64,000 bases of DNA from positions 372,001 through 436,000 of the forward strand of contig OZ251245.1 in the NCBI GenBank assembly GCA_965240325.2, read 5' to 3'. The position numbers and the translations under genes are program-made. The DNA comes from Rebecca billardiae RCC1528 (lineage: Eukaryota > Protista > Haptophyta). Shown piece after piece: positions 14,845 to 34,400 of this stretch (position 1 is the first letter of the stretch; each line of letters opens with the position of its first letter). The notes beneath the pieces are model-generated. The model saw only the letters and a list, made by a program, of their open reading frames with translations. It made no database searches and had not been told where the DNA came from.

Positions 14845-16620
14845 TCACATCGCGGGCCGAGGTGGCTGCGCGCGCGGCGGCAGCCACGGCGACGGATTCC
14901 AATCGCGCCCGTCGAAGCTGATGCCCTCGTAGTCGTGCTGGGTCTCGCCCCCACCAGCCTCCGCCTTCGCCGAGGCATCTCCAAATCGGGCGGCGGCGGT
15001 GTCGTCCTTCGGCCCAGGTGAGCGGCGGCGGGGCGGCGAGATCTTCGATCTCGGCAGCGCGCCCTTGCTCTCGTTGTGAGCCTGCGCGATCAGGTGGAGC
15101 AGCTGCGGGCTGATTGGCCGAGAGCTCGAGCGGCTGCGGTGCATCAGCACGAGCTGTGACGACGAGAGCCGCCGCGGCGGCACGAAGCCAGGCTCCGACG
15201 CCACGCCACCTCGCGCGCCCAGCGCGGATGTCGCGGGTCGTGCGGCCGCCGGCGCCGCCCGGCGCGTGCCTGCCACCCACTGCGTGGCCGGGTGCACGCC
15301 AGGCCTCCGGATCGGCGAGGTCGGATCGGTGCCGCCGCCGCCGTCAGCGCCACCACTCAGGGCGCTCGCCTGTGTGAGCTGACCCCAGAAGCTCACAGAG
15401 TGGCGCGGTGAGCCTCCGCTGGTGCGAGCACGGCCGGTGCCGGAGGCGCCCGCTGGCGGGGACGGCGGCACGCGCGGGCCAGCAGTAGACGCGCCCGCTA
15501 GCGGGGACGGCGGCACGCGCGGGCCAGCAAACGTGCCAGTGCCCAACGGGCGGCCGCCGCCGCCGCTCCCGCCGCCGCTCCAGCCGCCACTGCCGCCGCG
15601 GCGAGCCGGCGAGGCCAAGGCGAGAGGTGGCCCGCGGGGGGCGCGCCCTCGGCTCTCCTTGCTCGGAGCTACGAATGGCGGTGCCGGGGGCGATGGCGCA
15701 GCTGGTACCATCGAGGCGTGCCCCGCGACACCGCTGCGCATGGGCCGCGCGCCCTCGGCCGCAGCAGACACGCTGCTGCCACCGCCGGCAGCGGCGGGAG
15801 CAGTTGACATGCCATCGCCGCCGCCGCCGGCAGCCGTTGACGCGCCAGGCGAGGCGCCTCGGCCGCGGCCGGACTGCGCGCTGCGCCGCGCGCGCGGTGG
15901 CAGCGGTGTCAGGTTGAGCGAGACCACCGGCGGCATCGGCTCGTGCGCGTGCAGCGGCACCGCCGGGGCCACGAGCTGCCTCTGAAGCTCTCGGCGCGTC
16001 GTCGGAATTCCAAAGTTCGACACGGAAGCGCCAATGTCTCGAGCCTCCAGGCGGCGGTAGCGCTGCGTGGAGAGGCGCGTGTTCTCGCCGAAGTCGGCCA
16101 TGAGGTACCGCGCGTGCGCCTCCGAGTAGCTCCGCAGCCCCTCGTCCGGACGGCTGTCGTCGCCCAGAGTCCGGTGGTACAGCGCCTGCTGCCGCGCCTC
16201 GTCACCCGACAGCAGATCCTCAAGCATCTGCCGGCGGCGGAAGCCGCGCATCATCGTGCCGAACGAGACGAGCGCGAACGGGTTGTTGTGCGAGATCGCG
16301 TTGCGCGCCGCCTCGCCCGACGCCATGATGTCGATGAACTCCTTGAACTCGATCGCGCCCGAGTCGTCCGCGTCGAACGTGCTGATCAGCTGCTGCGCGT
16401 GCTCGTCGCTGAGCGTAAAGCCCATCGTGGTGAAGAGGTGCTGCAGCTCGCCGGTCTTGATGGTGCCCGTGCCGCGCGTGTCGATGAGCCGGAACGCGTC
16501 GTACGCGCGGGTCATGTCTTCCACGTTCCCCGTGCGCGTCTGCGCGCGCTTGCGCGCCGCCTCAAGGCGCCGGTCGCGCCGCGACTCCGCGATGCCGCTG
16601 CTGCCACCTCCGCGCGGCAT
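14845..16620 (-). CDS. EF-hand (calmodulin/centrin-like pair) protein with long disordered C-terminus
   Basis: EF loops DTRGTGTIKTGE and DADDSGAIEFKE. Start taken at the first ATG (MPRGGG). Confidence 0.8.
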   Translation of the reverse strand: MPRGGGSSGIAESRRDRRLEAARKRAQTRTGNVEDMTRAYDAFRLIDTRGTGTIKTGELQHLFTTMGFTLSDEHAQQLISTFDADDSGAIEFKEFIDIMASGEAARNAISHNNPFALVSFGTMMRGFRRRQMLEDLLSGDEARQQALYHRTLGDDSRPDEGLRSYSEAHARYLMADFGENTRLSTQRYRRLEARDIGASVSNFGIPTTRRELQRQLVAPAVPLHAHEPMPPVVSLNLTPLPPRARRSAQSGRGRGASPGASTAAGGGGDGMSTAPAAAGGGSSVSAAAEGARPMRSGVAGHASMVPAAPSPPAPPFVAPSKESRGRAPRGPPLALASPARRGGSGGWSGGGSGGGGRPLGTGTFAGPRVPPSPLAGASTAGPRVPPSPPAGASGTGRARTSGGSPRHSVSFWGQLTQASALSGGADGGGGTDPTSPIRRPGVHPATQWVAGTRRAAPAAARPATSALGARGGVASEPGFVPPRRLSSSQLVLMHRSRSSSRPISPQLLHLIAQAHNESKGALPRSKISPPRRRSPGPKDDTAAARFGDASAKAEAGGGETQHDYEGISFDGRDWNPSPWLPPRAQPPRPAM

Positions 16621-17072
16621 GGCGTCTCGAGCTGGTGCTCCGGCCGCAGCAGCAGGGTCTGCGCAGACGTGGGCAGGCCGAACGATGGGGGGAGCCACGC
16701 GCGGCTCGCTGATGACGAGCGCGCCCCGCGGCCCTTCCCAGCGACCACGAGGAGTGACGGCTCACAGCCGGGGCGGGGCGGCTCCCCACCTTGGCCTGCG
16801 CAGAGGTAACGTAAACGTAAACGTTCAGCAGGGACGCGAAACGTCCGCGCCATCTTTCAGCAGACGGATTTCCGTCGCGGGCTGCGTGCGCGCGCTCTTT
16901 TTGTCGTTTTACTGTATTCCCCAGCATCCGCCGGCGGCTGCTGCTACTAGCTAGCTAATCTAGCAGTCAGTGAGTGACGAGTCATCAGTCGTCAGGACAA
17001 CGCGCGCGATACAGCATATAGTATGCTGCGGGACAGCGGTTCAAGTCATCACGTGTCCTCAGGGAGTGCTGG

Positions 17073-20000
17073 CTACCACGAAGCCAGGGCCTCCTCCACA
17101 CCAGCATACTCGTCCTCCTCCTCGCGTCGCCATAGCGCTGCGGATGCCGGGCCCGCCTGCCACGCGCCATCGGCGCGCGCGGCCTCCATCGAGGCAGAGA
17201 CGGTCACAGAGCCCGAGGCGGCTGCCGCTGCGCCGCCTGCAGACCTGACCGTTGGCGCGGCCGATGGCCACAGCGCAGGCAGCCGCCTGCCGCGCGTCCG
17301 ATCGCGCGGCCGGAGCCGATGCGCCCGGCGCGCTGCACGGTGATCGGCCGCGCCGCCATCGTGGCGCCCATGTCTCTTCTCGCGCAGCGCGGCTGCGCCG
17401 GGGTCTGCGGCGCCACGGGCGGGGCTGGGCGGCGGCGGCGGCGGACGCAACGGAGGCATCAGGGGCGGCGGCTGCGGCGCGACCGGCGGCGGTGACACCG
17501 GCGGCAGCAGTGGCGGCGGCGAGTTGGGCGAGGGTGGCGGCGGCGCGAGCGGCGGCATGAGCGGTGGCGGCGAGTTGGGCTCCAGAAAGGCTGAGGGTGG
17601 CGGCGAGAGCGGCGGCAACAGGGGCGGCGGCGAGTTGGGCTCGGAGGGTGGAGGGGGTGAGAGCGGAGGCAACAGGGGCGGCGGCGAGTTGGGCTCGGAG
17701 GGTGGCGGGGGTGAGGGCGGCGGCGGAGGTGACAGGGGCGGTAGAAGAGGCGGCGGCGAGTTGGGAGTGCTGAGTGCAGGCGGCAGCTGCGAGGGCGGCG
17801 GCGGCGGATGCAGCGGCGGGGGCGTTGGCGGCGACGAATTCGGCGGCGGCGGGGCGTGTGGCGGTGGCGCATGCGGCGGTGGCGGCGACGGTGGGAGCGA
17901 TGACGGCGGCGAATTCGGCGGCGGCGGGGCGTGTGGCGGTGGCGCATGCGGCGGTGGCGGCGACGGTGGGAGCGATGACGGCGGCGAATTCGGCGGCGGC
18001 GGGGCGTGTGGCGGTGGCAGTGGCGGCACTGGCGGTCGTGGCGATGGTGGCGGTGGCGGCGAGGGTGGGTTTGGTGATGGCGGCGATGGTGGGTTTGGCG
18101 ATGGCGGCAGGGGTGGCGACCGCTGCTGTGATAGCATCGGTGGCGACGGCGGCCGGAACGGAAGCGGGGGCGGTGGCGAAGGCGAGGGCGGCGGTGGCGA
18201 GGGCGAGGGCGGCGGCGGCGGCGAGGGCGGTGGCGGGGATGGCGAGGGGGGCGGCGGCGGTGGCGAGTGCGGCGGTGTCGGCGGTGACGGGGGCGGCTGG
18301 GGTGCCGCATGCTGCGGGCTCGGCGGCGGCGGCGGTGACGGCGGCGACGGCGGTGCTGGCGACGGCGGTGGCGGCGGCGAGCCAGGCGGCGGGCTGGGTG
18401 GCGGCGGCGGCGACGGCGAAATCTGTGCCCTGGGCGGCGGCAGCGGCGATGGCGGCGGTAGGGGCGAGGACGAAGGCGGAGGGTGTGGCGAGGGCGCGGG
18501 CGGCGGCGAGGGCGAGGGCGGCGGCGGCGAGGGCGAGGGCGGCGGCGGCGATGGCGAAGGCGAAGGCGGCCGCGGTGACGGCGGCGACGGCCGCGGCGAC
18601 GGCGACGGCGGGGCCGAAGGCGGGACACCGAAGAGGAAGAATGGCGGCGGCGGCGGCGGCGGTTGAGGCGACGGCGGCGGCGAGGGCGGGGGCGGCGAGG
18701 GCGAGGGCGGCGGCGGCGGCGGCGGTCGCGGCCCCGGCGGCGGCGACGCCACTCGCACCGGCGGCGGCCGCGGCGGCGGCGGCGGCGCTGGCATGCCCAG
18801 GCACGAGCCGTCGTCCAGCACCGCCTCGAGTTCGTAATTCCTCGCCGCGAGCAGCGTGCAGCCCCACTTGGGCGGGAACGCCTCCTCGAGCAGAGCGCGG
18901 CCGAACAGGGCGGAGAGGCGGGCGCGGCCGATCGCGCGGAGCGTGTCAAGCGCTTTCGTGCCGTCCGCCCGGTGCTCCACCCTGAGCACCACGTCGACTG
19001 CGCCCAGGTCGGGCCTCGGCCGGACGAAGGCGACGTGCTCGTGCGGCGCGGTCACGTACAGCACGTAGGCCACGCCCTGCAGCAGCTCCGACCGCGCGTC
19101 GTCGCTGTACAGCAGCGGCCAACCGTCCGCCTCCTCGAACCGAAACGCGACATACTCTGAGCCCGCGCCGCGCGGCGCGGCGAGGAGTCCCGTGGAGTCG
19201 CCGTCGCCGGCGATGCGAGCGGTGTTGTCGAGCAGCGGCGGCATGGGCGGCGGCGGCGGCGCGGGCCAGCTTGGCGGCGGCGAGGGCGGCGGCGGCGAGG
19301 GCGAGGGCGGCGGCGGCGGCGAGGGCGGCACGCGTGCGTGCGGCGAGGGCGACGCTGCCGGCGACGGCTGCGCAGGCGGCTGCCACGTGACAAAGGGCGG
19401 CGGCGCCGCCGCCGCCGGCTGCTGCCGCGGAGGCGACGGCGACGGTGGTGGCGCTCTCTCGCCCGCTCGCGCGCCCGGCGGCGGTAACCTCGGCGGCAGC
19501 GCAGGCGGGTGCGGCGGCGGGGAGGCCGCGCCCGGCGGCGGGAACCTCGGCGGTAGCGCCGGCGGGTGCGGCGGCGGGGAGGCCGCGCCCGGCGGCGGCA
19601 ACCTCGGCGGTAGCGCAGGCGGGTGCGGCGGCGGGGACGCCGGGCCGCTCTGGAATGGCGGCGGTGAATGCCGATGTCGCGACGAGCTGGGAAGCGGCGG
19701 CGGGCTCGGCGGCGGCGGCGACGGGCTCGGTGGCGGCGGCGGCGGGCTGGGCGGAGGCGGCGGCGACGGCTGCTGCCGCGGAGGCGAAGGCGACGGTGGT
19801 GGCGCTCTCTCGCCCGCTCGCGCGCCCGGCGGCGGTAACCTCGGCGGCAGCGCAGGCGGGTGCGGCGGCGGGGAGGCCGCGCCCGGCGGCGGCAACCTCG
19901 GCGGTAGCGCCGGCGGGTGCGGCGGCGGGGACGCCGGGCCGCTCTGGAATGGCGGCGGTGAATGCCGATGTCGCGACGAGCTGGGAAGCGGCGGCGGGCT

Positions 20001-23000
20001 CGGCGGCGGCGGCGACGGGCTCGGCGGCGGCGGCGACGGGCTGGGCGGAGGCGGCGGCGACGGCGGCGGCGGAGGCGTTGGCGGCGATGGGCTGGGCGGC
20101 GGCGAGGACGGGCTCGGCGGAGGCGGCGGCGACGGCGGCGGCGGAGGCCGTGGCGGCAGCGGCGACGGCATGGCAGGCGGCGGCCCAGGCGGCGGGGTCG
20201 GAGGCGGGCCGAGCGGCGGCGAGGGCGGCGGTGGCGAGAGCGCAACGCCTGCCTGGTTGATGTCGGCGTCCGCGTCCACGAAGATCTGTGCGACCTGCGC
20301 CGGGCTGAGCGCGCGCACCCAGAAGCCCACGTCGTCCAGCGTGCCCACCAGCGGCGCGCTGCCCGGCCGCACGCCCGCGCCCAGGCGCACCGGACCGGCC
20401 GGACTGGTGGAGAGCGGCACAGTCGTCACGCTGCTCGACGCAGCAGGACTGCCGTTCACAAAGAGAGTGAGCTCGCCCGCACCGGACTCGCCCGGACCGG
20501 ACTCGCCCGGACCGGACTCGCCGGACTCGTACGTCGCGACCACGTGCACCGGCGTGCCCAGCGGGTAGGCCGCAGCGTCGCACAGCGTCTGCGCGCCCGT
20601 GCTCACGCACACGCTGCCGCCCGCCGTGTGCACCTCGAAGAGGCCACCCGGGGAGTCCGCGCCGTACGACACCAGACCCGCGTCCGCGGCCGACGGGCCG
20701 GGCTGCTCGAACCAGAACGCCACGGTGCGCGAGCTGCCGCCCGTGGAGGGCGGCGGGCCGTCGAGCAGCTGCAGGTCGCCGTCAAAGCGCACGCACCGGC
20801 CCACCTTGCACCGCGCCGCCTCCTCGTAGCCCCAGCCCTCCACGCCGCCAGAGGCGCCCTCAAACCCAACGCGCGCACCGCCGGAGCCGTCGAGCGGCGC
20901 GAGCGCCGACGCGCCGCCCGCGTCGTCGGCCAGGCGGCCGTCGAGCGTGAAGTGCCGGACCAGCTCGGCGGGCGGTGGCGGCGGCGACGACGGTGGCGGA
21001 GGGGGCGCGGCCGGCGGCGCGGACGGCGGCGGCGGCGGCGAGTCGTCGCAGGCCACCGACAGCGCCTCCTGCGTCCCCTGCCGCGGGCCGTCGAGAACTT
21101 TCCACGAACCTTCCGGCGGCGGCAGCTCGCACAGCACCACGCCCGGCTCGTCCTCATCCGCGAGGCAGCCCTCGACGCCCGCGGCGAGCATGGCTGTGCA
21201 CTCCTCCGCAAAATGGCGCACGTCCGCCTTCGACACGTGGCAGATCTTGAGCGTCCAGCCCGTGCGCGGCAGGAACGACAAGAAGACGCGCTCGGCGCCG
21301 TGCGCGTGCGTGCCGACGCGCTCAGGAAGGCAGCGCGTGCCCTGCACGTCCGAGGCGTCGCACTCGTAGACGGGGCGGTCGTGCCGCAGCAGGACCTGGC
21401 GGTAGGCGAACGCGCCGGAGATGCGCAGGTGCTCGCAGCCCTTCCGCCCCGGGGCCGTCTCGGGCGGCGTCGTCCTCGGCGGCGTGCCGTGACTCGGGCG
21501 CGGCGGCGGCGGCGGCGCCCGGGGCGTCAATGGCGGCGGCGTGGTCGCGCCGATCATGCCGCCCGTGGAGGGGGAGGGCGAGGGCGGCGGCGGCGAGGGC
21601 GGGCTCGGCGACGTGCGCGGTGGAGGCTGCGCGCGAGGCACCGGCGGACCCGGCGAAGGTGCAGCCGACGGCAGGGGAGGCGGCTGGCCGGCGCGCGGCG
21701 AGGGCGAGGGCGATGACGCCGACATACGCGGCAGTGCAGGCGGCGGCGCCGGCGGCGATGCCGATGGTGCCGGTACGGAGCCTGGCGGCGTCGAAGGCGC
21801 TGGCGATGGTGACGACGGCGAGGGCGGGGGCGACGGCGCTGGAGCAGAGGCGGGCGAGGACGCGGGCGGCGCGGTCGACGCGGCCGGCGAATGCGGCAGC
21901 GGCAGTGGCGGCGGCAGCGGCAGCTGAGCGGGCGCAGGCGGCTGCGTTTGCCGTGCGGACGGCGATGGCGGCAGCGAGGCCAGGGACGGTGGGTGCGTCG
22001 GGGATTGTGGCGGGGGCGACGTCGAGGGCGGCGGGCTCGCTGGCGGCCGCATGGGCGGGAGTGGCGGCAGCGAGGGGAGCGGCGCTGGCGGCCGCGGCGG
22101 CGGCGACGGCGGGCGCAACAGAGGATGGGGCGGCGGCGACGGCGGGCGCATCGGGGGGCGGGGCGGGAGCGAAGGCGGCGACAGTGGCGGCCGAGGCGGC
22201 GGCGGCGCGGGCGGCGCGGGCGATGCGCGCCCAGACACTCCCGGCGGGAACGATGGCGGCGAAGGCGGCGAGGGCGGCGGCGAGGGCGGCGGTGGCGGCG
22301 GCGACGGGCTCGGTGGCGGCGGCGACGGGCTCGGCGGCGGCGGCGGCGACGGCGGCGAGGGCCGCGGCGGACTCGGTGGCGGCGACGGGCTCGGCGGTGG
22401 CGGCGGCGACGGCGGCGACGGCCGAGGCGGGCTGGGTGGCGGCGAGTCGTCGCACTCGAACGACAGCGCCTCCTGCGCCCCCTGCTGCGGGCCGTCCAGA
22501 ACTTTCCACGAACCTTCCGTCGGCGGCAGCTCGCACAGCACCACGCCCGGCTCGTCCGCAAAGCAGCCCTCGACGCCCGCGGCCAGCACGGCTGTGCACT
22601 CCTCCGCAAAATGGCGCACGTCCGCCGTGGCCGTGTCGCACTTCTTGAGCGTCCAGCCCGTGCGCGGCAGGAACGACAAGAAGACGCGCTCAGCGCCGTG
22701 CGCGTGCGTGCCCACGTGCTCGGGCAGGCAGCGCGTGCCCTGCACCTCGGACGCGTCGCACTCGTAGACGGGGCGGTCGTGCCGCAGAACCAACTGGCGG
22801 TACAGCAGATCGCCGCCGACGCGCAGCTGCCTGCAGCCCCTGCTCTGGGCGCCGCCTTCGGGCGGCAGGCTCGCGCCAGGCATGGACGGGTCGAGCGGGC
22901 CCGCGCGGCGTGCCTCTGGCGCGGGCGGCGCCTGCGGCGGCACCGGCGGCGACGGCGGCGACGGCGGCGACGGCGGCGGCGACGGCGGCGACGGCGGCGC

Positions 23001-24560
23001 CGCGGGAGAGCCCAACGCCAGCGGCGGGGGCGTCGTTCCAAAGAGTTGGTCAGGGGGTCGCGATGGCAGCGAGGGCGAGCGCGCGGGCTGCTGCCGAGGC
23101 GAGGGCGCTGGGCCCGTGCGCACGGCGCCGGGTGGCGCGGGCGGCGTGCTGTCGGCCGCAGTCGGTGGCGGCTGCGGCGCGCCCCTGGCGCCGCCACCCG
23201 TCGGCGTGGGAGATGGATGGCTGCGCGGCGGTGGTGGCGACGCCGGCGACGGCGAGGGTGACAACGACGGCTGTCGGCGCGCAAGCGGTGGCGTCGGCGA
23301 GGACAGCGCTGGTGGCGCCACGGGCGCCCTTGTGGGCGGCGGCATCGTCGCGCCAATCATCCCGCCGCCCGACGACGGCGACGGCGACGGCGACAATGCC
23401 GGCTGCCGGCGAGAGAGCGGCAGCGGCGACGACGGCGATGGCGACGGTGGCGCCACGGCCGGCAGGACTGACTCGCTCCCCGGAGGCGGCACGGGCGCTC
23501 GCAACGTCCCACCGCCAGGCGAGGACCTGAGCGATGGCGACGGCGAGGGCGAGGGCGGTCTAGACGCCAGCGGGTTCTGCGCGGGCGGCGGCGAGCGTGC
23601 ACCCGTCGTCGCGCCAGGGCCGGGAGTCGGCGACGGCGACGGCGACGGAGACAGTGACGGTGATGGTGATGGTGTGGTCGCCCCGGGAGGTTGTGGCGGC
23701 CGTCCGGGCGGCGGGCTCCGGGGCGAGGGCGGTGGGAAGGGCGGGTCGTCCAGCCCCTCCAGCCAGCCAAGCCCAAGCCTGTCCAGCCCGACAGGCGGCG
23801 GGGGCGCGGGGCTGGGCGGGGGCGGCGAGGGCGGCGGCGGGTGGGACGGCGGGGGCGCTGACGGCGGTGGCGGCAGCGGCGGCTCCGACGGCGGCGCGCT
23901 GGGCGGCTCGGCCAAGTAGTACGAAAAGTAGCGGTCGCCGTACCCGTCGATCCCCGTCGAGTACCAGCGCGCGTACCCGTGCGCCGTGCACGGCCCGTAC
24001 CCGAACGTGAGCCCGTCTCGCGCACCGGCCAGGTTCTTGCGAGCGACGGCGAGGCAAACGTGTGTGCACTGCCGCCCGATCAGGCGGATGGCCTCGAGGA
24101 CGACGCCGCCGTGAGGGAAGGCGGTGCGGCACGGGTTGGGCGCGTCTCGCGGCACCTCGACGGTGAGCGGCGACTCCGTGCCCGACTGCGCGCCCTCGCT
24201 GAGCTGGTTGAGGTCGACGCCATCCATCGAAGCGGGGTGATTCGCGCAGCCGCGCGGCAGGCCGCACATGACGCGGCAGCACGCGCACTGGCAGTACGGG
24301 ACCTCCGAGAGCGGGAGCAGGCCGACGGTCGGCCGCAGGTAGCACCGCGAGAGCGAGTGGTCCGTGTGACACCGCCGCTTTGTGCACGTGTCGCACCAAT
24401 GGCCGCGCTTCTCGATTGCCGCAGGCACGGGCGCGACCGCGCGCAGCCCGGGGGCTGCTTCGCCCACTCCGCGCGCGTGCTGCGCGCCACCGGCGAGCAG
24501 CACGAGCACGGTGGCACACGAGGCGAGCACCACCACCGCGCACGCGCTGGCGCGCTCCAT
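17073..24560 (-). CDS. Giant Pro/Ser-rich (extensin-like) extracellular protein with Cys modules and a LamG/pentraxin-like domain (~2,495 aa)
   Basis: N-terminal hydrophobic segment MERASACAVVVLASCATVLVLLAG and abundant SPPPP repeats. Two copies of a ~130-aa Cys domain. LamG-like motifs RTVAFW, HVVATY, LFVNG and GTLDDVGFWVRALS. Confidence 0.8.
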   Translation of the reverse strand: MERASACAVVVLASCATVLVLLAGGAQHARGVGEAAPGLRAVAPVPAAIEKRGHWCDTCTKRRCHTDHSLSRCYLRPTVGLLPLSEVPYCQCACCRVMCGLPRGCANHPASMDGVDLNQLSEGAQSGTESPLTVEVPRDAPNPCRTAFPHGGVVLEAIRLIGRQCTHVCLAVARKNLAGARDGLTFGYGPCTAHGYARWYSTGIDGYGDRYFSYYLAEPPSAPPSEPPLPPPPSAPPPSHPPPPSPPPPSPAPPPPVGLDRLGLGWLEGLDDPPFPPPSPRSPPPGRPPQPPGATTPSPSPSLSPSPSPSPTPGPGATTGARSPPPAQNPLASRPPSPSPSPSLRSSPGGGTLRAPVPPPGSESVLPAVAPPSPSPSSPLPLSRRQPALSPSPSPSSGGGMIGATMPPPTRAPVAPPALSSPTPPLARRQPSLSPSPSPASPPPPRSHPSPTPTGGGARGAPQPPPTAADSTPPAPPGAVRTGPAPSPRQQPARSPSLPSRPPDQLFGTTPPPLALGSPAAPPSPPSPPPSPPSPPSPPVPPQAPPAPEARRAGPLDPSMPGASLPPEGGAQSRGCRQLRVGGDLLYRQLVLRHDRPVYECDASEVQGTRCLPEHVGTHAHGAERVFLSFLPRTGWTLKKCDTATADVRHFAEECTAVLAAGVEGCFADEPGVVLCELPPTEGSWKVLDGPQQGAQEALSFECDDSPPPSPPRPSPPSPPPPPSPSPPPSPPRPSPPSPPPPPSPSPPPPSPSPPPPPPSPPPSPPSPPSFPPGVSGRASPAPPAPPPPRPPLSPPSLPPRPPMRPPSPPPHPLLRPPSPPPRPPAPLPSLPPLPPMRPPASPPPSTSPPPQSPTHPPSLASLPPSPSARQTQPPAPAQLPLPPPLPLPHSPAASTAPPASSPASAPAPSPPPSPSSPSPAPSTPPGSVPAPSASPPAPPPALPRMSASSPSPSPRAGQPPPLPSAAPSPGPPVPRAQPPPRTSPSPPSPPPPSPSPSTGGMIGATTPPPLTPRAPPPPPRPSHGTPPRTTPPETAPGRKGCEHLRISGAFAYRQVLLRHDRPVYECDASDVQGTRCLPERVGTHAHGAERVFLSFLPRTGWTLKICHVSKADVRHFAEECTAMLAAGVEGCLADEDEPGVVLCELPPPEGSWKVLDGPRQGTQEALSVACDDSPPPPPSAPPAAPPPPPSSPPPPPAELVRHFTLDGRLADDAGGASALAPLDGSGGARVGFEGASGGVEGWGYEEAARCKVGRCVRFDGDLQLLDGPPPSTGGSSRTVAFWFEQPGPSAADAGLVSYGADSPGGLFEVHTAGGSVCVSTGAQTLCDAAAYPLGTPVHVVATYESGESGPGESGPGESGAGELTLFVNGSPAASSSVTTVPLSTSPAGPVRLGAGVRPGSAPLVGTLDDVGFWVRALSPAQVAQIFVDADADINQAGVALSPPPPSPPLGPPPTPPPGPPPAMPSPLPPRPPPPPSPPPPPSPSSPPPSPSPPTPPPPPSPPPPPSPSPPPPSPSPPPPSPPPLPSSSRHRHSPPPFQSGPASPPPHPPALPPRLPPPGAASPPPHPPALPPRLPPPGARAGERAPPPSPSPPRQQPSPPPPPSPPPPPPSPSPPPPSPPPLPSSSRHRHSPPPFQSGPASPPPHPPALPPRLPPPGAASPPPHPPALPPRFPPPGAASPPPHPPALPPRLPPPGARAGERAPPPSPSPPRQQPAAAAPPPFVTWQPPAQPSPAASPSPHARVPPSPPPPPSPSPPPPSPPPSWPAPPPPPMPPLLDNTARIAGDGDSTGLLAAPRGAGSEYVAFRFEEADGWPLLYSDDARSELLQGVAYVLYVTAPHEHVAFVRPRPDLGAVDVVLRVEHRADGTKALDTLRAIGRARLSALFGRALLEEAFPPKWGCTLLAARNYELEAVLDDGSCLGMPAPPPPPRPPPVRVASPPPGPRPPPPPPPSPSPPPPSPPPSPQPPPPPPPFFLFGVPPSAPPSPSPRPSPPSPRPPSPSPSPPPPSPSPPPPSPSPPPAPSPHPPPSSSPLPPPSPLPPPRAQISPSPPPPPSPPPGSPPPPPSPAPPSPPSPPPPPSPQHAAPQPPPSPPTPPHSPPPPPPSPSPPPPSPPPPPSPSPPPPSPSPPPPLPFRPPSPPMLSQQRSPPLPPSPNPPSPPSPNPPSPPPPPSPRPPVPPLPPPHAPPPPNSPPSSLPPSPPPPHAPPPHAPPPPNSPPSSLPPSPPPPHAPPPHAPPPPNSSPPTPPPLHPPPPPSQLPPALSTPNSPPPLLPPLSPPPPPSPPPPSEPNSPPPLLPPLSPPPPSEPNSPPPLLPPLSPPPSAFLEPNSPPPLMPPLAPPPPSPNSPPPLLPPVSPPPVAPQPPPLMPPLRPPPPPPSPARGAADPGAAALREKRHGRHDGGAADHRAARRAHRLRPRDRTRGRRLPALWPSAAPTVRSAGGAAAAASGSVTVSASMEAARADGAWQAGPASAALWRREEEDEYAGVEEALASW

Positions 24561-24759
24561 CGGCGCTGCCGATGCGCCGAGACGGACTGGCAGCCTGCAG
24601 CCGCGCGTTTGTCTTCGCTCGTGGCCACCGGAAAAAATCGGCTGCCCAGCCAGCGAGCTCGCGCGGGCCCAGCAGGCGGGTCCGGGTGTGCACGCAAGAG
24701 CGTCCGGACTCCGGAGCGTTCGCCCAGCGCCGTGCCTGGGCGCGCTACAGAGCAGCCAA

Positions 24760-27288
24760 ATGCCGGGTGTCGCGCCGTGGTGCACGCTGCTCGTCGCGGC
24801 GGCCGTGCGCGCGCCGACGCGCGAGATCGCGCTCGTCGAGGTCGGCTTTGGCGAGCTCCTCGCGAGTGACGCCGCCGCCGCGGCTCGGCTGCGCGACGCC
24901 CTCGCGACGACGGGCGCGGCCGCCATCGCGGGCGTTCCTGGGCTCGACGGCGCGCTCGACTCGGCGCTGCCGTCGGTGCACGCGTGCGCATCGGCGGCCG
25001 AGGCGGGCGGGGCGGAGCGCGCGGCCACCTGGCCGCCGTTGCGTCGCACCGTCGCAGGGCGCACCATCGCCGGCCGCCAGCAAGAGCTCGAGCCGAAGCA
25101 GTGCGCGCCGCCGCTCGCGCCGCTGCGATCCATCGTGCACCACACCTCCGAGCTCGTCCTCGCCGCCATCGACGCGTCGGGCGAGCTGGGCATGCGCTCG
25201 ACGAACGGCACGCGGTACGCGGGGCTCTCGGCGCTCGCGCGCGCCGGCGAGATCCTCGAGCACTTCCACGCCTACCCGCTTCGTTCGGGCGATGCGGACG
25301 GCGCGCCGAGCGCCGACGGCGCCGAGCGCTCGCCGCCCGCCGCCGCCACGGCGGACGGCGGCGGCGGCGGTGGCGACGGCGACGAGCCTCACGCGTGGAC
25401 GCTGCCGATGCACACCGACAGTGGCGTGCTCGCCATCATGACCCCCGGCGTGTACGTGCGCGCGTGCGACGGCGCGCGCGTGCCGCCGCCCGCGGAGACT
25501 GGGCTGTATCTCGAGCTGCCCAGATCGTATCTCGAGCCGCCGAGATCGGGCGTGGCGCACGAAGAGCCCGCGCCGCACGAAGAGCCTGGGCCTGCGCGCG
25601 CGCGCGCGGTCGCGCGCGTGGCACAGTCCGTGCGCGCGCGCCCGTCTTCGCTCATCGTCCTTGTGGGCGAGGGCGGCGCGCAGTGGCTCTCGCCCGCGCA
25701 GCCCGCGGCGGGCGGCGCGCCCGCGCGCCCCCTCCGCGCCGCGCCGCACGCGATGCGCGTCGGCGCGCGCGCCACCGACGGCGCCGGCGGCGCGTGCGCG
25801 CTCGTGGTGCGCGCGTGGCACGGGCGGATGGTCCTGCCGCCCGCCGACGCGCAACTGCCGTCCGGACTGCCGTTTGGCGCGCAGCGCGCGGCGGAGCGGG
25901 CGGAGCTCGCGCGCGCCAGCGGCTCGGCCAGCGCGCGCGGCATCGTTCGCGCGCCGGGCCGCCGGCTCGCCGCCGCCGCCGCCGAGAGCGCGTGCACCAC
26001 CGCGCACGGCGACGAGGGTATCATGTGCTGGACGATGTGTATGAGCGTGTCTTCTCTCGGAAGGTGCGCGGGCGGCGCAGCGCCGGTCTGCTTCGACACG
26101 GTCACGAACGAAACGGTGGACGGCGGCGCGCACTGCCCGTCACAGCCCATGTCGACGTCGTGCGAGCCGCGCTGCCCGCCGCCGCCCGAGCCGGAGCCCG
26201 GCGGCGGCGGCGGCGGCGGCGGGCACGATCCAACGCCGGGCGGTGACGGGCCGACCCCGCCGGCCACCAAGCGATTTTGCTCCGGTCCGGGCGTGTCGAT
26301 GTACATGGAAGGGTTCATGAGTGCGCTGCTGCAGGGCGAGCGCGCGCCGTGCGTCGTGCTGCTCCTCCCCGGCCTCGTCCTCGACTCCGGCCCGCGCCTC
26401 GCCCTCGGCTGCGCGGCGTGCATCGCGCTCGGCGCGAGCGTCGAGCTGCTGGCGCGCGGCCGCTCGAGAGCGTTCCGCCGAGCGACCCTCGAGCGCCGCC
26501 GCCGCGCGCGGCTCACGCTGTTCGCGCTGCACGCTGCGCAGCTGCTCATTGGCTACCTCCTCATGCTGGCGGCGATGACGTACAATCTCGAGATCTTCGT
26601 CAGCGTGCTCGCCGGGCTTGCCGGCGGGTACGCGCACACGCTCGGCACCGAGCGTGCGGGCCACCCCGAAGCCTCGCTGGAGCCGTGCTGCCCGCCGCGC
26701 GCGGACGTGGGCGCAGACAACGCGAGTAGCACGGGCGGCGGCTCAGACTCGGGCGGCGCGGCGGGCCGCGCGCAGGGCGGGCTGCTGCAGCCGCCGCCGT
26801 CCCTCGCGCCGCTGCTCGCGGGCGGCGGTGACGGCGGCGGCGGCGGCGGCGGCGGCGGCTTCACACCGTTCGGCGCGCAGGCCGGCCCCGGCATGCATAT
26901 TCCAATCGGCGGGCAGCAGCAGCAGCAGAATATGCCGGCGATGGCCGTGATCGGGATCGAGGGGATGCACTGCGAGGCGTGCGTGGCGCGTGTCCACGCG
27001 GCGCTCGAGCGGCTCGTCGAGAGCGCCGGCGGCCTCCCGGCCGACGACGTGAGCGTCAACCTCGCCGCGGGGCGCGCGTACGTGCGCGTGCGCCCGCCCG
27101 CCTCGCCGCCGAGCCGACGGCTGCGGAGCGCAGAGCTGGTCCACGCTGTGCAGGCGGAGGGCTACTCGGCGTGGGTGGCCCACGAGCCGATGCCGACGTC
27201 CGCGCCGCAGCCCTCGGCGAGTGCGGCGCTCGGCCACGCGCAGCACGGCGCCGACGGCGCGGCTCATCACCGACCGCACGTCGAGTGA
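24760..27288 (+). CDS. Fusion: signal peptide + 2OG-Fe(II) oxygenase-like domain + Cys-rich linker + Ctr copper transporter + HMA domain
   Basis: HxD (LPMHTDSG), distal His (AAPHAM) and RxWxGRM. Ctr features SMYMEGF, three TM helices, LMLAAMTYN (MxxxM) and GLAGG. HMA motif [10 protein letters not shown]...[10 protein letters not shown]...AVQAEGY. Confidence 0.85.

Positions 27289-27430: not shown

Positions 27431-27493
<63 letters not shown>
27431..27493 (+). repeat. Poly-G homopolymer (63 nt)
   Basis: Uninterrupted G run. Confidence 0.95.
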
Positions 27494-27495
<2 letters not shown>

Positions 27496-27520
27496 CGAAG
27501 CCGGAGCAGCCTAGTATAGC

Positions 27521-27668
<148 letters not shown>

Positions 27669-31189: not shown

Positions 31190-31423
31190 CGCGCCGTCCG
31201 AGGTGTGTGCTGACCAAAGCGCTGGCGCACGGGCGGCTCAGCTCAGGCAGCCAGCCATGCTGCCACTGAAAAGGCAGGCGCCTACAAGAGCTGTTCGATC
31301 TCGGCCACGAGATTGCTGCTGAAAGCTGCTCAGATTTCGCCAGACGCGCGCGGGGCGGCCCCCTTTTTGGCCCGCGCGGGTGCGGCGTCTTCGCTCCGGT
31401 TCGGGACCGCCCCCTGCACTCCT

Positions 31424-34400
31424 ATGGACACGCTCGACCACCCCGAGGCGCCACTGGCGTGGCAGCTGCGCGAGCTGTGCGAGCGCTCGGCGGCCGAGCA
31501 CGGCGACACGGAGGACGTTCCGAGCGACTACTTCCTCGCCGTGCCCTCGGCGTGCATGCGCGCGGACGACGCGGTGGCCGAGCCGTCGGACCAATGGAAG
31601 TCGACGCCCTCCGAGGTCGAGGCGGTGGTGTCGCGCATGCGCGACGACGGCTTCGTGGTGCGGCTGTACACGTCGAGCGTCACCGACCCCGACCACGTGC
31701 CGCTCGTCCTCTTCGTCGAGCTCGGGCTCACCGAGGCCGAGCTGATGGGCGATGCCGAAGCGCTGCAGCTGCACAAGCGGTGCAAGCGGTTCTGGGGCGG
31801 GCGGTACGGCTTCCTGCGCTTCTCGACGGAGCGCGCGACCGTGGACCTGCGCGAGCACGAGCCCGAGGCCGAGCACAACGGCGTCGGCATCTTCGCGTGG
31901 TGCTCCGACGCCGCGCGCACGTCGTCGCGCGACGACGAGCGCGCGTGCCGCCACCGGCGCTTCACGTCCGCAGAGCGCCTCCGGATCCTGCTGGACAAGC
32001 TGCGGCTCTCGACGGCGGTGACGCGGCTGAACATCGTCGACGCGAGCACGCTCGACGGCTACCCCTCCACCGACGAGGCCAACGACAACCTGCCGCCGGC
32101 GACCGCGGCCGCTGACGAGGCCGCGCTGTGCGGCGGCTGCTGCCGGCGGCGCGCGCGCGTCGCCGCGGTCCGCGCCGCGCAGCTCAAGCTGTCACGCGGC
32201 GTGAAGGGGCTCGGCTGCATCAAGGTGGCGGGCGGCGGCGCCGACGGCGCGCCCGGCCTTCGCGTGCCCGCGCTCTACTTCTCCGACGCCTCGCCCATCC
32301 ACGAGAGCGGCCGGCGGCGCGCCATCCGGAACACGTGGGTCAACCGGACGCTCTCCAAGTCCGCGTTTCGTCAAAAGTGCGCGACGGTCGAGGGCGACGA
32401 GGGGGACAACGAGCTGATGCGCGAGCTGGACGACCTGAACGACTACTTCGGCTCGCAGGTCGCGCTCTACTTCGCCTTCGCCACGCAGCTCATGATGTGG
32501 CTCGCCATCCCCGCCGTGATCGGCGGCGTGTGCTGGGTGGTCGGCTGGTGGATGCGCCGGCTCAACGTGTATCTGGTCCCTGCGTACTGCACCGCGCTCA
32601 TGGTGTGGGCGACGCTGTTCGCGGAGTACGTGGAGCGGCTGAAGGAGATCTGCGTGTTCCGCTGGGGCGGCGCCGCGCTCATCGCCGACGCCGCCGCCGA
32701 CGACGACGGCGGCTCCGCCGCGCTCGGCAGCCCGGCCGGCACGCACATGCGCGCAGAGTACAAGCAGCTGCTGCGGGAGGCCGGGATCGATCCCGACGAG
32801 CCGGATCCTATTGAGGTCTCGACGCGGATCGAGCGCACGTGGCGGCGGCGCGCGCGGATGCTGGTGTCGGCGCTGACGATGCTGCTCTCCACCACCGCGG
32901 TCATCCTCGTGATGACCGCCAACCTCACCTTCCGCCTGTGGCTCGCGCGCAACATGCCGCAGAAGGGACCAATTTATGGCGGCCTCGTGACCGGCCTCAC
33001 AATCTCGCTGCTTGGGATGACTTTCCGCGGGATCGCGGGCGCGCTCACGCGGTGGGAGTGCTGGCGCACGGAGGCGCAGCACGAGGACGCGCTCATCGCC
33101 AAGATCTTCATCTTCGAGGTCTTCAACAACTACTCGTCCCTCTTCTGTGCGCGCGCGCGCGCGCGCGCGCTCGTGGTGGTCTCGACGCGGCGCGAGGCGC
33201 GCGCTCGGCGGCGGTCGGCGCTCGGGGCGTGGCGTGCGGGCACAGCGCTGGCCACGGCCCCGCCTGGCGGTCGCCGCGTGCCCGAGCGGGGCCCTGCGCC
33301 GCGCCGCGGGTGCGGATGGGCGCGAGCGCCCGCTCACCCGCCCTCTCGCTCACGCCCGCCCCACCGCGACGCCGTGCCCCTCGCCGCGCCCGGCGCCACC
33401 CGCCGCCGCCGCTGCCGCCACGCGCCTCCGCCGCCGCCGCCGCCACCCGCCGCCGCCGCCGCCGCCGGCAGACATTGCCTTCGTGCGCGCACACATTGGG
33501 CGCGTGGCGCGCGCGCTCGGCATCGACGCGCCGGACTCGGAGGAGTGCGACACCTCGGACGAGTGCCTGCGCGACCTCGAGCTGCAGCTCGGCGCCATCC
33601 TCTTCGCCAAGGCGATCCTTTTCAAGATGATCACGGTCGGCACGATTCGGCTCACGCGCGCGGCGCGCATGCTGTACAACTCGCACATCGTGCCGTGCGT
33701 GAACCGGCTGCTGCGCCGGCGCGCGTTGGAGGCGCGCGCGCCGGCGGGCTCGTCGCCGACGCTCGCGCGCTGGCTCTCCAACGCGTCGTCGTCGTTCAGC
33801 TCGCTCTCCTCGCCCAAGCCCGGCAGCCATGGCGTCCTCAAGACGCTCTGGTCCGGTGTCGGGCCCCGGACTCTGTCACAGGAGTCGGTGGACGCGAGCG
33901 CCTCCCTCGCCTCGCCCGCGCCCGGCGGCCTCAAGCCCGACGGCGCCGCGCCAGCCGACGGCGCCGCGCGGCGCCGCCGCGACGCGTCCTGCGCGGCCGA
34001 GTCCGAGTTCTCGCGCCCGGCCGCCAGCACCGTCGTCGACGAGTACAAGGAGCTCGTGGTGAGCCGCGCGCCATCGACGCGTGGCGCGCGCGCATGCGCG
34101 GCTGCTGGAGCCCCCCGGCTGAGCGCGCGCGCACACCCTGCCCCGGCGCACCCCGCAGATCATGTACGGGTACATCGTCCTCTTCGCCTCCGCCTTCCCG
34201 ATCGCCCCCTTCCTCTGCATCATCTCGACCGGCCTCGAGATGCGCGCGGACGCCTTCAAGTTTTGCGAGGCGCGCCGCACGGTGCCGCGGCAGGCGCGGC
34301 ACCACCCGCTGTGGTTCCAGTGCGCGCAGCTGCTCACCACCGTCGCGGTGATGACCAACATCGCCCTCGTCCTCTTCACGGTCCGCGCGCGCGCGCCGCG

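Follow-up and report, generated by a model that had tools for sequence, protein, structure and literature searches.

Copper transporters of the Ctr/COPT family (yeast Ctr1 and Ctr3, human CTR1 and the plant COPT proteins; PF04145) share three transmembrane helices bearing the signature MxxxM-x12-GxxxG, a Met motif ahead of the first helix (TM1) and a Cys motif after the third (TM3), and are oriented with the N terminus outside and the C terminus inside. Their N termini are short and rich in Met and His, and their chaperone, Atx1 or Atox1, is a separate protein. The CTR1 and CTR2 proteins of Chlamydomonas carry large Cys-containing ectodomains, which are thought to gather copper and contain the CTRA motif (Page et al. 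2009; Strenkert et al., 10.1101/2023.10.19.563170). A further group, the CTR 'protist cluster', which is typified by the Albugo candida CTR and drawn from green algae and assorted protists, has a C-terminal HMA domain and an 'unannotated N-terminal domain' that is not related to the CTRA of Chlamydomonas CTR1/2; the domain also occurs by itself in a homologue, Cre05.g236039, a predicted secreted protein that the copper regulator CRR1 targets (Strenkert et al., 10.1101/2023.10.19.563170; Metallomics 16, mfae013, 2024). Here we describe a gene at positions 24760-27288 (forward strand) of a 64,000-nucleotide stretch of DNA, hereafter the window, from the haptophyte Rebecca billardiae RCC1528 (assembly GCA_965240325.2, contig OZ251245.1, positions 372,001 to 436,000). 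The gene is a further member of this noted class, for which the published account leaves the N-terminal domain (N-domain) without a fold or a function, and literature searches found no paper that characterizes the domain. What is new in this analysis is the assignment of a fold to the N-domain, the definition of a conserved metal site with its invariant residues, and a predicted topology.

A copper channel gene with two additional modules

The gene lies in an open frame that extends from 24382 to 27288 (+), the earliest ATG of which, at 24760, coincides with the point at which homologues begin; the coding sequence comprises 842 codons and a stop in a single exon, with no frame break across three domains. 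It should be emphasized that the length of an open frame is not evidence by itself at this locus, because G+C content is 59-80% across the window (69-77% in the region of the Ctr gene) and a six-frame listing of open reading frames (ORFs) shows long ORFs in every frame around it. That 24760-27288 represents a real gene follows instead from its Pfam matches to Ctr and HMA and from full-length homologues, which reach E 1.7e-92. Indeed, when 1.84 billion cluster representatives were searched exhaustively by phmmer with the 842-residue protein, 993 proteins passed E<=1e-3, of which 348 also passed E<=1e-10 and 61 E<=1e-30; most matches were about 550-750 residues long and aligned from the N-domain through the channel. 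A word-indexed protein search, run with the whole protein and with the N-domain alignment described below, was dominated by low-complexity words and gave 3-4 hits from 8000 candidates, while an exact look-up found the 842-residue product absent from the records. The named proteins nearest to the query come from Pavlovales sp. CCMP2436 and Diacronema lutheri, and the tree places the query with relatives from these organisms in a five-member clade (support 99). Several N-domain-Ctr paralogues are present in D. lutheri; one of these (P0152; 929 residues, 37% identity by BLASTP) has the same three parts, with GMVCTAC present, and is annotated as one unbroken exon of 2790 nt.

It could be argued that the frame is an artefact of high G+C, or the read-through of two or three adjacent genes, as long ORFs occupy all six frames and transcript support comes from relatives rather than from this locus. 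Homology, however, spans the whole frame in one register, and the domain order is identical in transcript-derived proteins of other species. Transcript_258 of Aureoumbra lagunensis ('type:complete', 617 residues) thus comprises N-domain and Ctr, while MMETSP Transcript_17555 (743 residues) has Pfam matches to Ctr and HMA together with the N-domain motifs; because such transcriptome-derived proteins carry the domains together, the fusion resides on single mRNAs in the relatives. Furthermore, the low-complexity inserts that distinguish the query from its homologues, which are (CGG)n, (GGC)13, (GCA)5 and a 21-bp tandem duplication, all preserve the frame, and the artefact is in practice refuted. 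Introns concealed within these inserts were also considered, and are unlikely because the inserts are frame-preserving trinucleotide or 21-bp tandem repeats located in loops and linkers. The in-frame arrays, which include the CGG repeats, the 21-bp duplication and the fivefold GCA, occupy 25349-25381, 25506-25548, 26199-26222, 26821-26859 and 26913-26928 of the window, and account for loops and linkers of poly-Gly and poly-Gln, which homologues lack.

The Ctr membrane core (residues 531-629; 26350-26646) was assigned from Pfam, modelling and hydropathy. PF04145 matches residues 574-624 with E 3.6e-12 (47.5 bits against a cutoff of 25.3), and three helices (544-574, 581-606 and 610-629) are predicted by hydropathy and by a low-confidence AlphaFold model of 5 sequences (predicted local distance difference test score, pLDDT, 43), from which only the secondary structure of the Ctr core and the HMA domain was taken. 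The family signature is present as MLAAM (602-606; 26563-26577)-x12-GLAGG (619-623), spanning 26563-26628 with the exact 12-residue spacing. At the mouth of the pore a conserved Cys/Met motif (506-519; 26275-26316), which includes MYM at 514-516, has C507, M514, M516, G518 and F519 invariant in 35 sequences, and TM3 is followed by a predicted cytosolic CC pair (C643 and C644; 26686-26691) that corresponds to the family consensus DPCC. A Gly/Gln-rich low-complexity linker (26692-26940), made up in part of the in-frame (GGC)13 and (GCA)5 repeats, connects the channel to an Atx1-like HMA domain (728-809; 26941-27186); in 27 homologues the equivalent linkers are 44-122 residues long. The HMA assignment is based on Pfam (PF00403, E 7.2e-06, 26.7 bits against a cutoff of 24.8), on the beta-alpha-beta-beta-alpha-beta order in the five-sequence model, where this block has a pLDDT of ~53-79, and on the family alignment, in which the query domain, with GMHCEAC at 735-741 (26962-26982), aligns with 27 HMA tails that all contain GMxCxxC. 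The secondary structure order and the GMxCxxC motif are shared with Atx1, Atox1, CopZ and the HMA domains of P1B-ATPases (PF00403); these domains, however, are free or are carried by an exporter, whereas that of the query is fused to an importer.

In contrast with canonical Ctr/COPT proteins, the query has a folded domain of ~365 residues and a module with eight Cys ahead of the pore, in addition to the fused chaperone-type domain. It resembles CTR1 and CTR2 of Chlamydomonas in being an algal Ctr with a large Cys-containing ectodomain. The CTRA motif of those proteins (CxxMxxMxxC-x5/6-C), however, was absent from the 842-residue protein in a pattern search, and kinship with their ectodomains was rejected on this ground. 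The protist cluster is comparable in layout: a non-CTRA N-domain fused to CTR, an optional HMA, stand-alone relatives and a spread through protists and green algae are common to both, and the query family displays the same layout in its oomycete, chlorophyte, diatom, haptophyte and pelagophyte members. Where the two accounts differ is that Strenkert et al. give no fold, residues or experiment for the N-domain, of which the first two are assigned here. Judged from its sequence, 24760-27288 is a genuine nuclear gene with a single exon, from a haptophyte of the Pavlovales type, and encodes a predicted Cu(I) channel of the Ctr family that bears two additional modules; a real fused gene that specifies a copper channel with an HMA acceptor is very probable. 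A preliminary description, made from the nucleotide letters, had proposed one uninterrupted ORF, a Ctr core, a C-terminal HMA domain and their fusion in a single chain, all of which agree with the Pfam, homology and transcript evidence above; the positions it gave for HTD, H330, MLAAM and GMHCEAC matched the translation exactly, and the MYM, GLAGG, CC and Cys-rich pieces that it named were located there as well.

Fold and metal site of the N-domain

The N-domain (residues ~20-385; 24817-25914) was compared with known proteins by means of alignment A3, which consists of the N-terminal regions of 82 homologues and query residues 1-500 (n=83) and underlies the conservation counts given below. Pfam returned no significant match for query residues 1-570 and none for the 83 N-domains, PF03171 and PF14226 being unmatched in 82 of these while one member reached E 0.037. 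When the A3 profile was compared with all PDB sequences, it matched 9hdl (E 4e-8), the pyrimidine nucleoside 2'-hydroxylase (PDN2'H) of N. crassa, which is deposited as 'clavaminate synthase-like protein'; the hidden Markov model alignment places the HTD motif on H-L-D of the enzyme and RAxPHA on its AVPHF. Weaker profile matches were to thymine dioxygenase, GA2ox3 and deoxypodophyllotoxin synthase. AlphaFold2 run on A3 gave a model with a mean pLDDT of 78.8 and a predicted template modelling score (pTM) of 0.76, whose poorly modelled parts were confined to the repeat-derived loops and the linker. A Foldseek search of the PDB with this model yielded more than 200 matches at E<1e-3, and the 50 listed, which include GA2ox3, DAO, ethylene-forming enzyme, DAOCS, T6ODM and T7H, are all 2-oxoglutarate (2OG) oxygenases or close relatives, as was likewise found in a fold search against Swiss-Prot models. 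VIA-align superposed 267 residues within the model range 16-381 on 9hdl (Z 22.6, root mean square deviation 3.2 A), and dozens of other enzymes, isopenicillin N synthase and ACC oxidase among them, scored ~Z 19. Similarly, 2OG-FeII_Oxy clusters ranked first (score 0.95) in a language-model feature search, and some oomycete relatives bear the automatic names 'Fe2OG dioxygenase domain-containing' or 'Isopenicillin N synthase-like Fe(2+) 2OG dioxygenase domain-containing protein'. As modelled, the N-domain is of the isopenicillin-N-synthase-like/DOXC type, with an N-terminal alpha/beta part and a double-stranded beta-helix. The profile match, the model and the fold searches bear out the earlier proposal of a jelly-roll resembling 2OG-Fe(II) oxygenases, and the HxD...H triad and downstream Arg that had been recognized with it proved near-invariant in the 83 sequences.

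The HxD of the facial triad (H218, T219 and D220; 25411-25419) lies at the end of strand 215-220, with H218 conserved in 82 and D220 in 83 of the 83 sequences, and the distal His, H330 (25747-25749; 82/83), is in the motif RAAPHA at the start of strand 330-333. The last barrel strand (349-359) carries the sequence R351-A-W353-H-G355-R-M357 (25810-25830), in which R351, W353 and M357 are each conserved in 81 and G355 in 82 of 83. In 2OG oxygenases the arginine of an RxS motif binds the C5 carboxylate of 2OG. As the motif strands follow the canonical order of the enzymes, R351 would occupy the position of this arginine, and on the same equivalence of strand order the Ser of RxS is replaced by Trp at position 353. 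The first long barrel strand (164-174) contains a second conserved motif, LEHFH (166-170; 25255-25269), with E167 in 82, H168 in 80 and H170 in all 83 sequences, followed by Y172, which is Tyr in 76 and Phe in 7. Successive side chains of a strand point in opposite directions, so that L166, H168, H170 and Y172 should face one way, as should R351, W353, G355 and M357; if these faces line the interior of the barrel, as they do in known enzymes, the metal site may have two additional invariant His, one Trp and one Met around it. Additional conserved positions are R95 (82/83), R123 (83/83) and R326 (78/83), and a Cys pair, C76 (79/83) and C115 (80/83).

Between the N-domain and the pore lies the Cys-rich module (residues 412-472; 25993-26175), which was defined by conservation. 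Its eight conserved Cys (412, 423, 427, 436, 444, 459, 468 and 472) include those of the pieces CWTMC (423-427), CFD (444), CPS (459) and CEPRC (468-472), and the CWxxC is near-invariant in the 83 sequences. The AlphaFold2 model presents the module as small beta-hairpins packed on the N-domain (pLDDT 73-85), and an atlas feature search with it returned only noise (scores 0.62).

The isopenicillin-N-synthase-like/DOXC oxygenases (9hdl, rice GA2ox3 6ku3, DAOCS, T6ODM and ACC oxidase) thus resemble the query domain across its whole fold (Z 19-22.6), in carrying HxD...H on the same strands and in having an Arg on the last barrel strand. These enzymes, however, are soluble and cytosolic, whereas the query domain is predicted to be secreted and is tethered to a channel; the conserved Cys pair, the Trp in place of the RxS Ser, the invariant LEHxH and the lack of a PF03171/PF14226 match are its own. 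We consider it likely that the domain adopts an oxygenase fold, lies on the extracytoplasmic side and carries a metal site that is functional. It could be argued that the domain is instead a pseudoenzyme with a purely structural or sensing role, in trimer assembly, in gating by external metal or in binding to the cell covering, in keeping with the exchange of Ser for Trp in the co-substrate pocket, the loss of Pfam recognizability and the packing of the Cys-rich module on the N-domain in the model (pTM 0.76). Such proteins, however, usually lose their metal ligands, whereas the triad is kept here in 82-83 of 83 sequences, along with H168 and H170, and we regard a pseudoenzyme as improbable.

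Predicted topology and proposed handling of copper

The first 18 residues (24760-24813) resemble a signal peptide in hydropathy and alignment, with a hydrophobic core at residues 8-16 (Kyte-Doolittle hydropathy 2.58 over 9 residues), and a similar N-terminal stretch is found in 90 of the 115 homologues that start with Met. The signal peptide proposed in the preliminary description is putative, its assignment deriving here from hydropathy. The conserved part of the N-domain begins at about residue 21, and the first strand of the model spans 21-29; segments resembling transmembrane helices are confined to residues 531-621 of the query, with none ahead of TM1 by hydropathy. Given the putative signal peptide, the absence of a hydrophobic segment before TM1 and the known topology of Ctr proteins, the oxygenase-fold domain and the Cys-rich module would be extracytoplasmic, either outside the cell or in a lumen, and by the same reasoning the HMA domain would be cytosolic. 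The conserved C76/C115 pair and the eight-Cys module would fit an oxidizing compartment. Plastid targeting was considered and rejected, as the fold would start ~3 residues past the presumed cleavage site and leave no space for a transit peptide.

Ctr topology equally places the N terminus in the lumen of internal compartments, and the protein could thus be a vacuolar or acidocalcisome exporter, like yeast Ctr2, whose lumenal oxygenase-fold domain mobilizes stored copper. This would be consistent with the account by Strenkert et al. (10.1101/2023.10.19.563170), in which Chlamydomonas CTR2 is required to remobilize acidocalcisome copper, and the several paralogues of D. lutheri would permit a division of labour. 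The stand-alone relative, however, is described as predicted secreted, and export would alter the location of the protein rather than its mechanism, a lumenal site being compatible with copper capture, with catalysis or with a structural role. We consider an exporter unlikely.

The best overall explanation, which we favour with some reserve, is that the protein is a Ctr copper channel with an extracytoplasmic oxygenase-fold metal centre that feeds the pore and a tethered HMA domain. Three ectodomains would sit above a trimeric pore, and their metal centres would capture copper either as Cu(II) or as copper on a carboxylate ligand that occupies the 2OG pocket. The triad, perhaps together with H170, would bind the Cu(II) or copper-carboxylate in the former Fe/2OG site and pass it to the Cys/Met gate; after reduction, Cu(I) would travel through the MxxxM filter to C643/C644, and from there to the MxCxxC of the tethered HMA domain and on to cytosolic targets. 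The same hand-over has been proposed for free Atx1/Atox1 at the C termini of Ctr1. On this reading the protein would be the 'self-contained copper acquisition unit' that the preliminary description suggested. The Irving-Williams series predicts that a 2-His-1-carboxylate site in oxic seawater would retain Cu(II) much more firmly than Fe(II), and this order of affinity in oxic, iron-poor water, together with the extra invariant His, Met and Trp, favours the capture of Cu(II). That the ectodomain mainly binds copper rather than acting as a catalyst is possible, and we put it forward only tentatively. A copper context is suggested by the fact that Cre05.g236039, as a stand-alone protist-cluster N-domain, is a CRR1 target (Strenkert et al., 10.1101/2023.10.19.563170).

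The retention of the barrel Arg, Tyr172 and the other invariant Arg favours a different reading, in which the ectodomain is a working oxygenase or oxidase that uses Fe(II) or copper with O2 and 2OG, ascorbate or another acid. Such an enzyme would attack organic Cu(II) ligands or otherwise make Cu(I) at the mouth of the pore, partly replacing or assisting a cupric reductase of the FRE type. The full catalytic set of triad, barrel Arg, Tyr172 and several invariant Arg has been kept over deep divergence, and the fold superposes on active enzymes at Z 19-22 over its full extent, with the N-terminal part and a C-terminal segment resembling a lid included. Before Ctr can transport Cu(I), moreover, marine algae have to deal with Cu(II) on organic ligands, and the cell-surface reduction of ligand-bound Cu(II) that this entails is poorly understood in these organisms (PMC9502191). 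Set against catalysis, Fe(II) and 2OG are scarce outside the cell, and in a labile site Fe(II) would be displaced by Cu(II) or Zn(II). In 81 of 83 sequences Trp stands in place of the RxS Ser, the lack of a Pfam 2OG-FeII_Oxy match in 82 of 83 members indicates that the domain has diverged far from known enzymes, and no substrate can be named. An enzymatic ectodomain is rather unlikely, without being negligible.

Several points nevertheless weigh against the capture of copper by an oxygenase-fold centre that feeds its own channel. The proposed clustering of H218, D220, H330 and H170 derives from strand order and the alignment to PDN2'H, and the barrel Arg, Tyr172 and the invariant R95, R123 and R326 look, in the aligned sequences, more like an organic-acid-binding enzyme than a metal trap. 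The change of the RxS Ser to Trp, in turn, makes the binding of 2OG itself uncertain. The topology would be compatible with location in the plasma membrane and in the vacuolar membrane. The identity of the N-domain with that of A. candida CTR and Cre05.g236039 is presumed from agreement in description and taxa, and a word-indexed search with a cleaner alignment returned no Chlamydomonas or Albugo entry. Finally, two look-ups found no RNA or DNA run on record for this locus.

Distribution, genomic setting and implications

The architecture is not rare, being represented by the 348 cluster representatives at E<=1e-10, of which about a quarter also have the HMA tail. Among 167 fetched proteins in which the parts were counted, 61 had the N-domain motifs together with the Ctr signature, and 19 had these and MxCxxC after the channel; a further 24 had the N-domain without a detectable channel, part of these being fragments. 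In a FastTree phylogeny of 79 complete members, built from an alignment that left out the HMA tail, the presence of HMA requires at least 7-9 changes and is found on both sides of the midpoint, which argues for a tail of old origin that was lost or gained on repeated occasions. Members with names or labels belong to Diacronema, Pavlovales, Aureoumbra, Paulinella, Ectocarpus, Ochromonas, Phytophthora, Aphanomyces and Peronospora, so that the family includes haptophytes, pelagophytes, brown algae, oomycetes and Paulinella; the labels of fold clusters, which are dominated by Chlorophyta, Bacillariophyta and Oomycota, add chlorophytes and diatoms. One member, CAK9019786.1, which we take to be a dinoflagellate protein, carries the automatic name 'High affinity copper uptake protein 1', and a cluster search of the AlphaFold DB returned A0A7S3JW09 ('Copper transporter'), A0A7S4QLB2 ('HMA domain-containing protein'), R1CZ96 and W4GK05, the last two presumably from Emiliania huxleyi and Aphanomyces, respectively. 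In the preliminary description the architecture was not recognized as characterized. It is widespread in protists and had been noted, without fold or function for the N-domain, by Strenkert et al. (10.1101/2023.10.19.563170), so that one refuting condition set in that description, an architecture 'common and already described', applies in part. Two pairs of N-domain proteins of 419-482 residues (P0101/P0169 and P0168/P0170) have no Pfam Ctr match on record, and each is a paralogue pair on one contig (JGI contigs of 69,237 and 4,657 bp), which suggests tandem duplication of a soluble N-domain form in some organism.

Within the window, a 617-residue EF-hand protein (14848-16698, -; Pfam EF-hand_7, E 1.7e-13) lies ~8 kb upstream of the Ctr gene. 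A 615-residue relative of this protein is encoded in D. lutheri (L001 5847-7691, -), 54 bp beyond a paralogous N-domain-Ctr-HMA gene; the two EF-hand proteins share 37% identity over 182 residues (E 2e-37) and a second conserved block, and the pair of EF-hand and Ctr genes may be an old segmental duplication that has since been rearranged. On the opposite strand, a giant frame of 2712 residues (17073-25211, -) consists mostly of Pro/Ser-rich repeats with a Laminin_G_3/concanavalin-A-like domain (E 8e-13), and its upstream end extends over the initial 450 nt of the Ctr gene; the overlapping part is probably non-coding, and the true start of the giant frame is likely to be further in. Approximately 140 nt past the Ctr stop codon, 27431-27668 comprises a perfect run of 63 G, then (TA)59 and (TG)13, and an open frame at 31313-34348 (+) contains an Anoctamin/TMEM16 domain (Pfam E 6e-35).

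The value of these observations lies in a hypothesis at the level of the family rather than in this single locus. Ctr proteins carry only Cu(I), copper in seawater is Cu(II) on strong organic ligands, and how algae bridge the two is partly understood through FRE reductases (PMC9502191). The present study places a well-conserved oxygenase-type metal centre on the predicted outer side of the channel in a large family, which is found in major groups of marine phytoplankton and in oomycete plant pathogens, and the fold, the intact triad and the additional LEHxH provide concrete residues for mutation. The fused HMA tail, similarly, offers natural 'Rosetta stone' support for a direct hand-over from the C terminus of Ctr to Atx1-type domains. 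At its boldest, which we think unlikely, the hypothesis sees in the ectodomain a metalloenzyme of 2OG-oxygenase descent that works outside the cell, where it breaks or oxidizes the strong copper ligands of seawater, or reduces Cu(II), above its own channel and chaperone. In a variant of this idea the barrel would be a two-site copper relay, with Cu(II) held at His218, Asp220, His330 and His170 and a CusF-like Cu(I) site formed by Trp353 and Met357. If true, the metalloenzyme would unite three steps of copper acquisition in a single polypeptide, and would provide a new answer to the question of how phytoplankton gain access to ligand-bound copper.

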